DNA of 63,848 nucleotides, the filler included, from Hyphochytrium catenoides (taxonomy: Eukaryota > Protista > Hyphochytriomycota): the NCBI GenBank assembly GCA_900088475.1. It is 12 parts of 12 records of this genome, joined end to end, with 100 filler letters (N's around TTAATTAATTAA, not from the genome) between each part and the next. Parts side by side here need not be neighbours in the genome. Positions count along the whole stretch, not along the records: positions 1 to 18,152 come from FLMG01002697.1; 11 more parts are not named here. One strand, written 5' to 3'. The notes below the pieces were generated by a model, which saw only the letters and a list, made by a program, of their open reading frames with translations, did not search any database and had not been told where the DNA came from. Below, piece by piece: positions 1,924 through 15,075 of the stretch; within the stretch, counting starts at the first letter, position 1, and each line of letters starts with the position of its first letter. Both the position numbers and the translations under genes were made by a program.

Positions 1924-7478
<5,555 letters not shown>

Positions 7479-9357: not shown

Positions 9358-12300
9358 TCATAGCAGGTGGGGCCGACCTCTCTTCTTTTCGTTACTTCGA
9401 ACCAAGAAGCATGATGAGTTCTCCATCATTAGGGATAGAGCTGGTAGGTGCTTGTGCTTGGGCTGAATAAAGCTAGGATTATTTGGTCCATTGTTCGAAA
9501 GTGATGCTGTGATCACTTCATCTGAGTCCAAGTAGGTCCGAACTCCTGCAAGGAGCACATCGGGAAAGAACCACGTACTGGTAGCACCTTCAAGTGACGA
9601 CGGTGAAGATATCTCTCCAAGCTCCGGGTCCAAGGGTATGACGTGCTCTGCAGGGATGTTTTTGATGGCACTGAGGTACTGACCGGAAACCCAAGCGTAG
9701 CCTTCAGAGATACGAGCCAGCTTGAAGGGCAGGATTGTCACCAGGGTTCCACCTCTCAGCTGTCCAGAGCGAAAGGACTTCTTCGCTGTCCTATCTTGAA
9801 TCAGATCTAAAGCTCCAACAAAGAAGGAGTAAGCCACAGGGTGTCCGTGACCCCCCTTTGTTTTGAATAAGAAGGCTATAGGATCCCCGCAGTCAGCATG
9901 TGGGCAAGAAGACCCCTCCTCTTCTTGCTGAATAGTAAGATCCAGTCCTGCAGGCACGTCTTGAGGCACGTTTCCAAACTCTGTGTAGCCTCGGACCCTT
10001 CGTAGGCGGTCAGTAGACAGAGCTTTGTGGAAGCTCTCCTCCAGCATGAGCCGTACCGCGGTTTGCTTCTTAACGTTCACACCTTCAACTGAAACAAAAG
10101 GATCAATTCCTGCAGCCGTTGAGTTATGGGATGCATCAAGTAGCGCCTCGTCAACCTCCAGTCGCTCCTCATCCTCCTCGTCGGCAGGATGATTGAGAGC
10201 TGATTGATATCGCTATCATTTGGGCGAGTTCCTACCGAAGAGGAATTAGCCTCTGTCGCACCGGCTCTAGAAACCTCTACCTCCTTTTGATCATCCAAAC
10301 CTTGAGCTTCTTCTTCACTAAAGCCATCCTCTTCACCACTGCTGACTCCCACAGGCGCGCCAAAGGGCCTTAGCAGACTAACTCCTTCTTTCTCAGCTGT
10401 GTCCCACAAGCCGTCTATCATTTCATCGAGGTTTGCTTTTCTGAAAGCCAGGTCACAACGGTCACGTCCAAAGTCCCACATCTGCCGTACATCCGCTGAG
10501 GATGCGCTCACCTCTCCTTTCCAAGACCTGGGGTTTAGATGACCAATGCCATCCTCAAAAGCAACCTTGAGATGCTTGTGTCCACGGTCTAAATCTGGGT
10601 ACTTTTGAAAAATGCGCAGCAGCTGGGCGGCACTTGCTAGATTGGATCGCAGCTGAAGAATGTCCATGTTGGGTGCGTGGTTGGTGGTACGAGCCATGCT
10701 GAAGAGTACCTCTTCCAAGTCCGTGCCCAGAAGGAAAAAGTGAATAGGCAAGCTAGGGTTAACAGCTTGAGCTTTTAGTACAAAGCTAAAAAAGGCTCTA
10801 ACCAGAACCTGCAAGTCGTAGTATAGCTGCCCAGGAAGAAAACTCGTCTTGTTCCAGCGCCAGCAGACAAACATGATGTGGGCTGCTGTAGACATTTCAG
10901 CCAGTTGTTCCGCCAACGTCATCGTGACGTCTATCAGTGGCCTTAGTAGCGCGCTTACCAGACGACTCAAAATCGTGAAGGACGGCAGCATGGCTTTTAG
11001 CGAGAGAGCATTATGTCCCGGCGGTGTCCTAGAAGTGTTAAGAGACTCGTTGAGCTCCGCCAATGAGGAAGTGGAATGACCAGCAACCATTGCAAAGAGC
11101 TGAGTGCAGATCTTGACGTTCATTTTGTCATTCACGTCTAATAGGGACCTAAGCTTTGACGGACTGTGTCCGAGCGCCACTAACAGTCCAGTCAGTCTAA
11201 ACTTGTCAAATGAAGCACCACTAATTCTGACTCCGACAGAAGAGCACAGTCTCGTCCGCAATCTCTTCAGATCATTCTTCGGATCAGTACCGAACTCGGT
11301 CAAATTGCCATCACCATAAGCAAGATCTAGGAGATTGAGACGGCGAAGAACCTTGTAGACGCCAGCCATGGGCTCAGACTCTGGAACGGCTGCACGCTCA
11401 TCTAGACTTCGTCCATTAGCGTCTATGATGCTAAAGTTTGAGTGCCTTCGTCGGGAGTCCCCATTTGTAAAGTCGCCAGCATAGACTGCTCTCCTACCTT
11501 TCAGCTTGGCGACCATCACTTTAACAATGGTCTCCGTAACTTTCCTGTGAAAGGCCGCATCATTCGCTTTGCAGGAAGGGAATATGAGTACGGGTCTGGC
11601 TGCATAGTTATGGCCGTCCATTATAGATATGGAGACCACTGTCGCTTCCACAGCTTGATGATGGCGCCCACTTCTGAGAGCGTTCGTGAAAGTGTTAAGA
11701 TCGTATTGGGTGCGGAGTTCCCTGCAAATACCGTCCCCATGCTCCGTACAGGCACCCCAAATCGCGTTGTCTGCTGGATCATATCTGAACCGCTGCCAGA
11801 ATTGTAAGATGAACAGTAAGCTGCCCTCAGTAATATCATCGTGGCTGTGAAGAGGAAAGAATTACCTTTGCCAACGCAATCTCATCCCTCATGGTGAATA
11901 TAAGCACGTTAGCAAGATTCAGGCTCTTGTCAAGAACGAGGTCCAGATTGTATGCCAAGTCCGCGTCTAGACGCTCCAAGCTCTGCGTTGCCCTAAGGTC
12001 CATCTTGGCCCCTAGCTGGTAAAGCCACGACAGCTGAGGCAAACCGCACATTCGTGCTAAAAGATGGACCATCATAGGAGCACCAATCCTTAGCACCAGC
12101 ATCCCCAAATCAACGTCCTTCTGGTCGAATCCCTTGGCCTTGTATCTATACTCCGCAGCCTTGCCTAATTTCTCCACAATATAGCCTATGCTGCGCCCTT
12201 CCCGTAACGCCCCGGCAACAACATGTCTCAGCCTTGGGACGTCATTGCTTGAGATAGCTAGTACCATCTTTTTGTAGATATTGAGCTTCTTAGCCTGACG

Positions 12301-13305
12301 CAAGTTATTCCTTCTCGCAGTCAGCAGTCTTAGTCTCTTCGTCGCGGCTTCAACTGCTAGCTTGTCCTTGCGCTCCTTCAACTGAGCATACGTCCGATAG
12401 TTGTCCGCTAGATTTGGATGCTCCTCATTTGCGCGCCTCTCAAGGTTCACGACAGTGCGCAGATATTTCAAACCGGAACAGGGTTTACAGGATAGTGCCG
12501 GAGAAGCCACAATCTTTTTGCAGTCACTTGCTAAGATGGCATCCTCAGTGAATTTGAAAGATCGTTGGTTAGGCGGCAGGGCGAAGGGAAGGTTAAGGTG
12601 CACCGGCTCAGGCACTTGCGGTTTGTATCCATTGCAGTAAGAGAACGCTCCATGCCGAATGCCGTCTTCAATTCTTGTCCTAATAGCCTCGAGAAGGCAT
12701 GGCGCCACTGCAATAGGTTGAGACAGAGACGGCGAAGATCTGGTGGGTCGAAGCTCAAGCGATGCAAGTTCTGGCCCGTTACTAGTGTTGTCAGGATGAA
12801 CTTCCTCTGCGGCAGACAATACTTCATCAGCATCCGCGCCGTCGCTGTCGGAGCCGATAATCGTTGCACCACCGCCCTTCTCCAAAGCTTCTCCTCCACC
12901 ATCACCTCGGCACCTTAGCTCTTCTCGACTATGCTTTGGCTTCTTCGCGAAAAAGCGGCCTATCTTGGGAACAGAGGCCATCATCACACGACGGTTTCTT
13001 TCCATGACGGCGGTCTTATCTTCACATGTTTTCATGTGTCGATCTCTGTTGGCAACATTGTCATAAGGCCCGAATTCCCTCTTACAGTGAGGACAAGGAT
13101 CCAAGGCAGGTCTCTGCTTCCACTTCTTGCCTGAACAACCTACAGCGCCTTCCACGATGAGAATGGCGGAAAGAAGATCAACAACAATGAAAGAGGCAAC
13201 AACAACGAGGAAGGTAGTGGTGCAGTGCTCCTTGCCAGCGGTAGAAGAAAAGGTCGGGGCCGATAGAACTTGGTAGTATCGACCTATCATCAGAAAGGAA
13301 ATCAA
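9358..13305 (-). mobile_element. P-element-like (DDE, DxxH-type) transposase gene, intron-containing, probably catalytically impaired
   Basis: Three long collinear minus-strand ORFs, with a phase-0 73-nt intron (11865-11793) joining the first two. Motifs in order: CPHC..H..C zinc knuckle, coiled coil, GLPxLSWL, RDEIAL, TNGDSRRR, DPKNDLKRLR, DKMNV, GTDLEEVLF..R, STDRLRRVRGY. These parallel P/THAP9 motifs (DEM, DG, DxxHxxK, DKMxV, DxLExxF). No TIR or TSD located, and the start codon is uncertain. Confidence 0.72.
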
Positions 13306-13401
13306 ACTCGATTTTTGTGCTCAACAAGACGAGACTGGAACTCTCGAAATCTGCTTGCTGCTTTCCTTTTATTAGCGCGCCATTCTAAAAACGAAGGGCT
13401 A

Positions 13402-13580
13402 AAATTCACTTCTACAGTGGGGAAAAGTTGCGAATCTGGGGGGCCTCTAGGAATATTAACTATGGGGTTTCGGATGAGAAAACTCAAAAGGGTTGGGAGG
13501 TCTGGGGCTCCGACAACTCCATAGATAATATTCCTAAAAGGCCAGATTCGCATCTTTTCCCTACAAGTAGGAATGAATTT
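13402..13580. repeat. Imperfect inverted repeat (fold-back), ~73-bp arms, 34-nt loop
   Basis: 13402-13474 is the diverged reverse complement of 13509-13580. The mirrored ORFs MRIWPFRNIIYGV (-) and MRIWGASRNINYGV (+) in the track reflect this. Confidence 0.92.
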
Positions 13581-13801
13581 CCTGATAAGTTAGCTCTTCG
13601 CCCTTATAAATTAACTGAAGAAATGGCCTAACCTTACCACAGGCTCCTAAATATNNNNNNNNCTTTGGCAGACTACAATAATAACCCCTTGGAGTCCTCT
13701 CTGCATCACAGCCTCACCATCACCAGAAAGAAGCATGCTATCATCCCAGATCCATTTTTTTTTATTTGTTAGAGAAAAAATGTGCCTTTGAGACTGGATA
13801 A

Positions 13802-15075
13802 CTACTAAGAAGATGAAGGATGAAAGAAGAAGAAGAAGGAGGAGGAAGAAAAAAGAAAAAGAGAAGGAAGAAGAAGAAGAAGAAGAAGGAAAGGAGGAAG
13901 GAGAAGAAGAAGAAGAAAAAAGAGGAAGAAGAAAAGAAACAAGGAAAGTTATGACGCCTTGGTCTCGTCCTCCTCAACCTGATCTCTTCCCATCATCAGT
14001 AAAGGAAGAACCATAATTGATCTCGTCCGTGATAATAAGGGGAGAAGCAGGAGGAGGAGGTGAACCATCGACCACAATGTCATCATCATCAACTTCAAAC
14101 GTCGCGAGGCAAGCAAGAGAAGGGTCCAACTGCTCAAGAGGAATACGCTTCAAGATCTGAAGCGCATTTTCCTCATAAATCGCCATAAAGTTCCTCGCTT
14201 TTTTAGCGAGCAATGATTAAGGAGTGACTAGTAGACTACTGTTTAGAAAAGAAGATATGAAAAATGTACCGCGAACAAGAAGAACAAGAGCGAAAACTAC
14301 TAGTAGGCCAGAAAAAAGGAAAAGAGGAAGAAAGCGGCTCCATCATCACCCGACCACCAAGGGCGGCGGCCGGGGAGGTTGTTGGGTAGGAAGCGAGAGC
14401 TGCGGGGACACTGAGGAGGACGCGGAGAGATCATCTTCCTCACCAATAATGCGGGAGAGGAAAAGTTCTTGATTCTCCCCTTGAACATCAATAGGATGAC
14501 GAACAGGAGCCGGGGCGGTCGTAGGTTGAGAAGAAGAAAGAGGAAAAGAAAGAAAGGGAGAAGAAGAAGAAAGCGGAGAAGAGTGGAAAGCAGCAAGAAA
14601 AGGCGTAGAAGGGTCAACCGGGAAACAATCATTCGGGCTGCCTCCTCGCGCAGAGCCAACAAGGAAACTTGCCTGATCAAGCGGTGCCGAAGGAAGCGTA
14701 CATCGCGTTCAGCTGCGACCGTTCGATCCGCTTGGGCCGCACAGATGGTGTTGATAAAGCCCGACGAACACATCGAATTTCCCCTCTTTATTTTTTTTAT
14801 TATTGATCTACTAAAATCTACTAAGAAGAAGAAAAAGATGAAGAAAGAAGAAGAAGAAAAGGAGGGAGGAGAAGAAGAAGAAGAAAAAAGAGGAAGAAGA
14901 AGAAGAAGAAACAAGGAAAGCTATAACCCCTTGGTCTCGTCCTCCTCAACCTGATCTCCTCCACACTTATCATCAGTGAAAAAAGAATCATAATTGATCT
15001 CTATCAGTAATAACAAGGGGAGAAGGAGGAGGAGGGGGAGGTGAACCATCAACCACAATGTCGTCATGAGCAACC
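13802..15075. repeat. Diverged direct repeat pair (~260-290 bp; 13802-14095 and 14818-15075) containing (GAA)n tracts
   Basis: Shared blocks CCTTGGTCTCGTCCTCCTCAACCTGATCTC, CATAATTGATCTC and GGTGAACCATC.ACCACAATGTC. Confidence 0.88.

Follow-up and report, generated by a model that had tools for sequence, protein, structure and literature searches.

What kind of gene lies at positions 9358 to 13305 of the 63,848-nucleotide stretch of Hyphochytrium catenoides DNA analysed here (assembly GCA_900088475.1; hereafter the window), and does it still encode an active transposase? A preliminary description had read three minus-strand open reading frames (ORFs) at this locus as one spliced gene for a large P-element-like transposase of an apparently unnamed family. 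Our analyses make it probable that 13290-9358 (minus strand) is a single-copy nuclear gene with three exons in a stramenopile, derived from a P-superfamily transposase and most likely immobilised, possibly domesticated.

Three ORFs, one gene

The ORFs, the gene model that joins them and the matches of a family profile at the locus are as follows.

13305-11836, minus: ORF 1, 489 aa
11651-10077, minus: ORF 2, 524 aa; frame open upstream to 11792
10080-9358, minus: ORF 3, 240 aa
11866-13290, minus: exon 1, 475 codons if counted from the first ATG, at 13290; the frame is open from 13305
11793-11865, minus: intron 1, 73 nt, GTAATT...GGCAG, read directly from the sequence
10236-11792, minus: exon 2, 519 codons; rest of the RNase H-like core and predicted alpha-helical insertion domain
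10177-10235, minus: probable intron 2, or frameshift site, 59 nt, GTAGGA...GACGAG; borders not fixed
9358-10176, minus: exon 3, 272 codons and the stop
11866-12420, minus: profile positions 7-195 (profile search)
10254-11795, minus: profile positions 195-686 (profile search)
9622-10194, minus: profile positions 688-874 (profile search)

Removal of intron 1, whose borders (11865-11793) are exactly those given in the preliminary description, yields the in-frame junction peptide RDEIALAK-RFRYDPADNAIWGACTEHG, at the place where the fungal relatives read DE(I/L)xxExRxRxD without a break. That single intron had been thought sufficient to join the three ORFs. Its part in the model stands, but the frames of ORF 2 and ORF 3 are offset by one base, and therefore a second intron or a frameshift is needed between them. 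Upstream of its listed start, the ORF 3 frame stays open for a good distance, across an acidic stretch, and both this stretch and an F..V.G..V.K motif in the exon 3 frame resemble the relatives. The simplest way of restoring the frame is to remove the 59-nt interval 10235-10177; many other GT..AG pairs inside 10280-10165 also do so. With both intervals removed, the model is 3,816 nt long, has its sole stop at the end and encodes 475+519+272 = 1,266 aa from the ATG at 13290, close to the roughly 1,250 aa first estimated. A stop-free run of about 1,270 codons is far beyond chance.

A profile built from 70 family members was searched against the whole genome (61 Mb, 4,759 contigs). It gave three matches only, all at this locus, collinear and abutting in profile coordinates. 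The alignment of the relatives likewise runs on over both junctions (DELSLEERPRYHxATNAVxGICREHG, and later SDRLRRVRGY). Because the profile matches are collinear and abutting and the homologues are uninterrupted across both junctions, the three ORFs are one gene, as had been proposed. The exons were joined only for counting stops and listing splice options; they were used singly in searches and folding, and the full core was studied through a contiguous homologue, P0002.

Organization of the predicted protein

The following modules and motifs were located along the gene.

13095-13024, minus: N-terminal C2HC zinc knuckle (exon 1)
about 12639-12469, minus: second Cys-rich module (exon 1)
12396-12253, minus: predicted coiled coil, from the sequence pattern only (exon 1)
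12258-12229, minus: AISSNDVPRL (exon 1)
12045-12022, minus: GLPQLSWL, the end of a helix-turn-helix region (exon 1)
11889-11866, minus: DE motif RDEIALAK, bearing the first catalytic Asp (exon 1)
11477-11445, minus: GDFTNGDSRRR, in the family SDGExxRR (exon 2)
11285-11256, minus: DPKNDLKRLR, in the family DxKHxxKR, the D(2)H motif (exon 2)
11129-11115, minus: DKMNV, in the family DKQDV (exon 2)
10727-10701, minus: GTDLEEVLF, bearing the catalytic Glu (exon 2)
10601-10578, minus: YPDLDRGH (exon 2)
10541-10515, minus: HLNPRSWKG, followed by an acidic linker (exon 2)
10011-9985, minus: DRLRRVRGY, after the acidic stretch (exon 3)
exon 3, minus: putative beta-rich C-terminal domain; in P0002, the corresponding region is modelled with confidence as a beta domain

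Over its length, exon 1 can be aligned with the N-termini of 17 full-length fungal relatives, with D469/E470 invariant; it reads in order a C-x2-C-x15-H-x4-C knuckle, the second Cys-rich module, a heptad-rich stretch, a helix-turn-helix (HTH) and the invariant DE. The knuckle, which had been noticed from the start, is conserved across the relatives and gives a weak zf-C2HC_2 match (E 0.045). Neither the window protein nor the 17 full-length relatives has a Pfam match to the THAP zinc finger. All four additional motifs named beforehand (AIxSxDVPRL, YPDLDRGH, HLNPRSWxG and DRLxRVxGY) are present. Among the P-like motifs listed beforehand, the expected DxxH..K reads DPKNDLKR, with Asn for His, and the expected DG reads GDFTNGD. 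The last ~88 codons of exon 3 (9621-9358) lie outside the family profile match.

Predicted P-type fold and catalytic signature

Structure comparison, a profile search against the PDB, sub-threshold Pfam matches and neighbours in the ESM-Atlas all point to the P superfamily, as first suggested. The Foldseek comparison that had been proposed as a check matched the model of window exon 2 to the transposase of the Drosophila P element (DmTNP) with a probability of 1.00, everything else remaining at or below 0.21. By Foldseek and VIA-align, DmTNP stood alone on top both for window exon 2 and for the full-core homologue P0002. The structural alignment on DmTNP begins at chain residue 159. In the profile-versus-PDB search, the best match was again DmTNP (6p5a), in two collinear stretches with a weak whole-hit E of 0.038. 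The first stretch covers an HTH, '..lPS..TL.R' (DmTNP 121-196), whose window counterpart reads GLPQLSWL; the second aligns DxxHxxK to D339 and KQxV to K398-Q399-V401. A single-sequence PDB search with the exon products gave no match.

In Pfam, PF21787 (TNP-like RNase H N-terminal domain) matched 9 of the 17 long relatives below threshold (best E 0.0014, under 24.6 bits); it is the sole family to recur among the 17 full-length relatives. The gathering scores of PF21787, PF21788, PF21789, PF12017 and PF12596 were not reached, and the window protein has not even a sub-threshold match to PF21787. A genome search with PF21787 gave no match in H. catenoides and likewise none in 14 control genomes, which makes this negative uninformative. 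The ESM-Atlas neighbours are P-transposase clusters, the top ones carrying PF21787, PF21788 and PF21789.

The signature string of P transposases reads D (beta1) ... D (beta4) ... [C/D](2)H right after beta5 ... E (alpha4) (PMC8230255). In the P0002 model, D79 lies in beta1, D197 (of SDG) directly after beta4 and D245xxH248 directly after beta5; a helical insertion of ~170 residues comes next, and E421 sits in the helix after it. In the predicted architecture, an all-helical insertion divides the RNase H-like domain between beta5 and alpha4, and the fold as a whole is that of DmTNP. Across the clade, the D of the DE motif is nearly invariant, the SDG D and D170 are each present in 69 of 70 sequences, H173 in 68 of 70 and E361 in 66 of 70. 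Conservation and the secondary structure of P0002 thus together reproduce the string at clade level. In the window's own string the first D and the E are present, D(2)H reads D-P-K-N and SDG reads GDFTNGD.

V401 and D528 are among the residues of the fly enzyme that contact guanosine triphosphate (GTP) (PMC7776569), and the family D358-x-x-E361 has the spacing of D528..E531. The likeness of KQxV and D-x-x-E hints at a conserved nucleotide pocket in the family; the window protein has M for the Q of KQxV.

A large clade with mobile relatives in Agaricomycetes

A word-index protein search with exon 2, covering proteins of 314-999 aa, retrieved five relatives, from Tulasnella, Suillus and three other assemblies, that are 25-28% identical. 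An exhaustive hidden Markov model search collected 3,686 cluster representatives at E<=1e-3, with 1,174 at <=1e-30, and family members reach lengths of about 1,750 aa. All 17 sampled relatives with a source name are annotated as 'hypothetical protein' and come from Agaricomycetes (Pleurotus, Psilocybe, Gymnopilus, Hericium, Amylocystis, Arthromyces, Tulasnella, Suillus, Sistotremastrum, Earliella, Ceratobasidium, Rhizoctonia, Tephrocybe and Mycena), which confirms the suspected basidiomycete kinship. We found no published name for the clade in the literature, Repbase and Dfam not being covered. Together with the 'hypothetical' labels and the lack of any Pfam family at threshold, this supports the earlier view of an unnamed family; the clade is very large and, provisionally, unnamed.

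The window copy stands apart from these relatives. It is 24-34% identical to every sampled fungal protein, and in a maximum-likelihood tree it joins between two large fungal clades, inside neither; its terminal branch measures 1.64, the median being 0.5. A search of the metagenomes of the Joint Genome Institute (JGI) yielded no close relative.

For one fungal subclade, metagenome contigs (soil or root) were retrieved with a tight clade of eight members. Similarity between two of them, L014 and L023 (88% identical), stops sharply at ends reading CAAGGGGGCACCGG, in inverted orientation. A systematic scan delimited four elements of ~6-8 kb, with 14-17-bp terminal inverted repeats (TIRs) beginning CAAGGGG and perfect target-site duplications (TSDs) of 8 bp.

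L012, 3347-9433: 6.1 kb, TSD AAGAAACT
L014, 7886-15767: 7.9 kb with nested insertions, TSD CAGATAGC
L027, 3874-10227: 6.4 kb, TSD ACTACTCT
L055, 8430-14432: 6.0 kb, TSD CAGATCCT

Eight bp is also the TSD length of the P element and of zebrafish Pdre (PMC7776569). The relatives in Agaricomycete-type contigs are real P-type mobile elements. L023 has the same TIRs as L014, and matching 8-bp flanks are absent from it.

Some contigs of this set have internal rearrangements. L014 carries two internal insertions relative to L023 (8170-8726 and 14399-15711), suggesting nested repeats. In L063 and L066, the family ORF lies within a long inverted duplication (470-bp reversed match) that produces false TIR/TSD calls. 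Two apparent TIR and TSD matches in L066 were rejected, as they fall inside this duplication and their 'TSDs' are themselves palindromes.

State of the window copy

A count of copies by tBLASTn had been called for; profile, protein and DNA searches all agree that the window gene is the only family core in the 61-Mb genome. The accompanying inspection of the flanks, from which ends and a TSD were to be defined, recognised neither. No perfect inverted repeat of at least 10 bp with a 2-10-bp TSD flanks the gene within several kb; CAAGGGG occurs around it about as often as expected by chance, in no case as a pair spanning the gene. TIRs with TSDs were thus found for relatives and not for the window gene.

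The core has also changed. Among the 40 covered positions conserved in >=90% of 69 fungal sequences, a purely fungal conservation set, the window protein keeps 27 (68%), whereas each fungal sequence keeps 86-100% in a leave-one-out comparison. Both MAFFT and HMMER robustly support H173N, which replaces the histidine of D(2)H, as well as Q224M, E77N, D417G and L360E, and DKQDV has become DKMNV. In GDFTNGD, the MAFFT and model registers place Asn110 at the position of the second catalytic Asp, and the window copy has likely lost this residue. The first Asp, the catalytic Glu, D170, K176, D222, V226 and D358 are retained. Given its single copy, its missing terminal repeats and the loss of several family-invariant core residues, the window copy is probably not an active transposase of a mobile element.

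Codon use in the gene correlates with that of host genes at r 0.53-0.61, compared with 0.58 for host genes among themselves. The window gene is single-copy, devoid of transposon ends and intact as an ORF amid host genes, as a domesticated transposase gene would be. On the same contig, a PEX6 ORF (N-terminal domains and the start of the AAA ATPase) occupies 1924-3531 (plus strand) and presumably continues downstream through introns.

The host itself was placed with a complete cytosolic HSP70 encoded on another contig of the assembly. It is closest to oomycetes (83-89%), followed by xanthophyte, chrysophyte and brown-alga sequences, in keeping with the protist host assumed beforehand. The host is thus a stramenopile, probably Hyphochytrium catenoides, whose published assembly was screened for contamination (PMC5795050).

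The tail of exon 3 has a counterpart elsewhere in the genome. Positions 9396-9640 have one DNA duplicate of about 200-245 bp at 77-79% identity, in inverted orientation, on contig C2215 (within 5043-5825). Beside it, the minus strand of C2215 encodes a single-copy Cys/His module, C..C..L.PH.AAHIL.D...CGFCG followed by N.P..CPEC...W.Y...H..H, with one frame change. This module is similar to the C-terminal zinc-finger module that fungal relatives of 1,600-1,700 aa carry and the window gene lacks (tblastn E 0.002-0.06, seven queries). The duplicate and the module may be the trace of an old rearrangement or of a second, mostly deleted copy. A KKRGRP motif common to the gene tail and the C2215 module was discounted as an AT-hook-like coincidence, its orientation being opposite to that of the DNA duplicate.

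Relic, host gene or active element

According to the explanation that we favour, the ancestor would have been a P-superfamily cut-and-paste DNA transposase, and the window protein of about 1,266 aa would descend from it. Its predicted order is C2HC knuckle, second Cys-rich module, coiled coil, HTH and split RNase H-like DDE core, then an acidic linker and a beta-rich C-terminal domain, with the insertion domain where the GTP-binding domain sits in the fly enzyme. The transposon context would have been lost, so that the copy would no longer move. It would persist as a young relic or, by analogy with THAP9, as a host gene, DNA-binding or nuclease-derived, that has been domesticated. Domestication is a candidate reading of the single-copy, end-less, intact-ORF state, and the gene is possibly domesticated. 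The analysis establishes the gene structure other than the precise borders of intron 2, the predicted fold, the single copy, the lack of ends, the altered residues and the TIRs and TSDs of the relatives, whereas loss of transposition, domestication and the host species are inferred.

Decay is the alternative that fares best, though we consider it unlikely. The locus would then be the pseudogene of a once-mobile element, with a genuine frameshift between ORF 2 and ORF 3, a lost C-terminus and frames that are not yet broken. Such a history would suit the one-base offset and the weak GAG acceptor of the proposed 59-nt intron, one of many possible ones, as well as the last ~88 codons, which are not family-like and in part duplicate the C2215 segment. 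The zinc-finger module beside that segment, like the C-terminal one of long fungal relatives and absent from the window gene, the many substitutions at invariant sites and the long branch would fit too. However, the gene shares only about 28% identity with its nearest relatives and is far too diverged to have kept ~1,270 stop-free codons without selection. Moreover, the exon 3 frame is still homologous to the relatives past the junction, and intron 1 is clean.

Somewhat less likely still is a P-like transposon that remains autonomous at very low copy number, with TIRs too short, imperfect or lineage-specific to be noticed and residue differences that reflect an old stramenopile lineage. The unbroken frame of 1,266 codons and the retained first Asp, catalytic Glu, D170, K176, D222, V226 and D358 are compatible with activity; HMMER can place Asp107 at the second catalytic Asp, and the conservation set is solely fungal. 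Against this stand the one copy in 61 Mb, flanks devoid of CAAGGGG pairs and, over several kb, of perfect inverted repeats (>=10 bp) accompanied by a TSD of 2-10 bp, the spliceosomal introns and host-like codon use, and the loss of invariant residues, the D(2)H histidine among them.

Two further explanations are very improbable. Recent acquisition or contamination (of the contig or the gene) from a basidiomycete would account for every named relative being an Agaricomycete, but it is at odds with an identity of only 24-34% to all sampled fungal proteins, a long branch between two large fungal clades rather than within one, host-like codon use, the PEX6 gene on the same contig and the contamination screen of the published assembly (PMC5795050). 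Membership of another RNase H-fold superfamily (hAT, Transib/RAG1-like or KDZ/Plavaka/CACTA) could be argued from the 8-bp TSDs, [C/D]xxH motif and insertion domain of hAT and from RAG1, Transib and Hermes lower in the structure lists, but neither a Pfam transposase domain of the KDZ, Plavaka, CACTA or hAT type nor Hermes as best structural match was obtained.

Several observations nevertheless weigh against an immobilised and possibly domesticated P-superfamily descendant, or narrow it. Membership of the P superfamily rests mainly on predicted structure, from models built on alignments made in this analysis; sequence identity to 6p5a is 12-13%, and no Pfam family reaches threshold for any exon or relative. 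The second junction could be a frameshift instead of an intron. In GDFTNGD, HMMER instead aligns Asp107, reading FTN as inserted residues at a low posterior, and the catalytic triad may therefore be intact, depending on the alignment. The intact frame of 1,266 codons also fits a recent, still active element with unrecognised ends. As for domestication, no orthologue was found in another species by the word search (314-999 aa window, in which full-length relatives of >999 aa could be missed) or in the JGI metagenomes. Finally, the HSP70 that identifies the host lies on a different contig from the gene.

Comparison with P elements and THAP9

The Drosophila P element transposase (6P5A/6PE2) comprises a THAP domain, a zipper, an HTH, a split RNase H domain with a GTP-binding insertion and an acidic tail. 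The window protein mirrors this order save for the first and last parts. In place of THAP, the family has a short C2HC knuckle and a second Cys-rich module, and it has a large beta-rich C-terminal domain, to which the long fungal members add C-terminal zinc-finger modules. Family proteins are 1,200-1,750 aa long, compared with 751 aa for the P element transposase, and their TIRs begin with CAAGGGG. hAT (Hermes) and Transib/RAG1 also have an RNase H fold in which an insertion domain separates beta5 from alpha4; hAT shares the 8-bp TSDs as well and has a CxxH motif.

Like THAP9, a domesticated P-like transposase of vertebrates, the window gene is single-copy and without transposon ends and has kept a long ORF intact. 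THAP9 retains its DDE triad and cuts DNA (PMC8230255), whereas the window copy has altered SDG and D(2)H motifs and would represent an independent event in a stramenopile. The gene is thus a candidate for a separate, THAP9-like domestication.

P-type transposons have been regarded as rare in fungi: a Pfam-based survey of 2017 counted 11 copies ('single occurrences'), and the known cases came only from Pucciniales (rusts) and Allomyces (PMC5751038). Those elements and the clade described here are both P-superfamily DNA transposons in fungi, but the former are few and Pfam-detected, whereas the latter, with 3,686 representatives, escapes the Pfam P models. The locus has led to a clade of thousands of distinct members in mushroom-forming fungi that has the P element transposase fold and an 8-bp target duplication, yet would be missed by surveys of transposable elements (TEs) based on Pfam domains, its proteins being deposited as 'hypothetical'. 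A stramenopile copy would extend the clade beyond fungi. As the family appears to keep two GTP-pocket positions, it could serve to test whether GTP-dependent P transposition is ancestral.

A broader proposal is that hyphochytrid or pseudofungal stramenopiles domesticated a P-type transposase independently, giving a protist counterpart of THAP9, and that an ancient, so far unnamed P branch runs from stramenopiles to fungi. We put it forward tentatively, at somewhat less than an even chance. The putative branch would be recognised by a C2HC finger rather than THAP, a large beta-rich C-terminal domain, CAAGGGG ends and 8-bp TSDs; it would have expanded massively in Agaricomycetes, unseen by the Pfam P/THAP9 models of TE surveys. 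Should Repbase or Dfam hold these elements under the label P, the novelty would be reduced to the protist copy and its altered core.

Repeats next to the gene

About 70-110 bp upstream of the gene start lies a foldback repeat of about 230 bp (13372-13603) that resembles a miniature inverted-repeat transposable element. Its outer ends read GGGCGAAGGGCTAA.. and ..TTAGCTCTTCGCCC, and it contains an inner palindrome at 13417-13564. At least 15 copies are present at 70-92% identity on other contigs of the genome. It was considered as a non-autonomous partner of the window gene and rejected, since neither its ends (GGGCGAAG..) nor its TA/TTA-like flanks, in place of an 8-bp duplication, fit; it is probably unrelated to the P-like family. 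Farther upstream, 13930-15075 holds a tandem duplication whose period is about 975 bp and whose blocks are 86-93% identical, within GA-rich (GAA/GAG)n low-complexity sequence, and a strong purine skew continues to about 16000.

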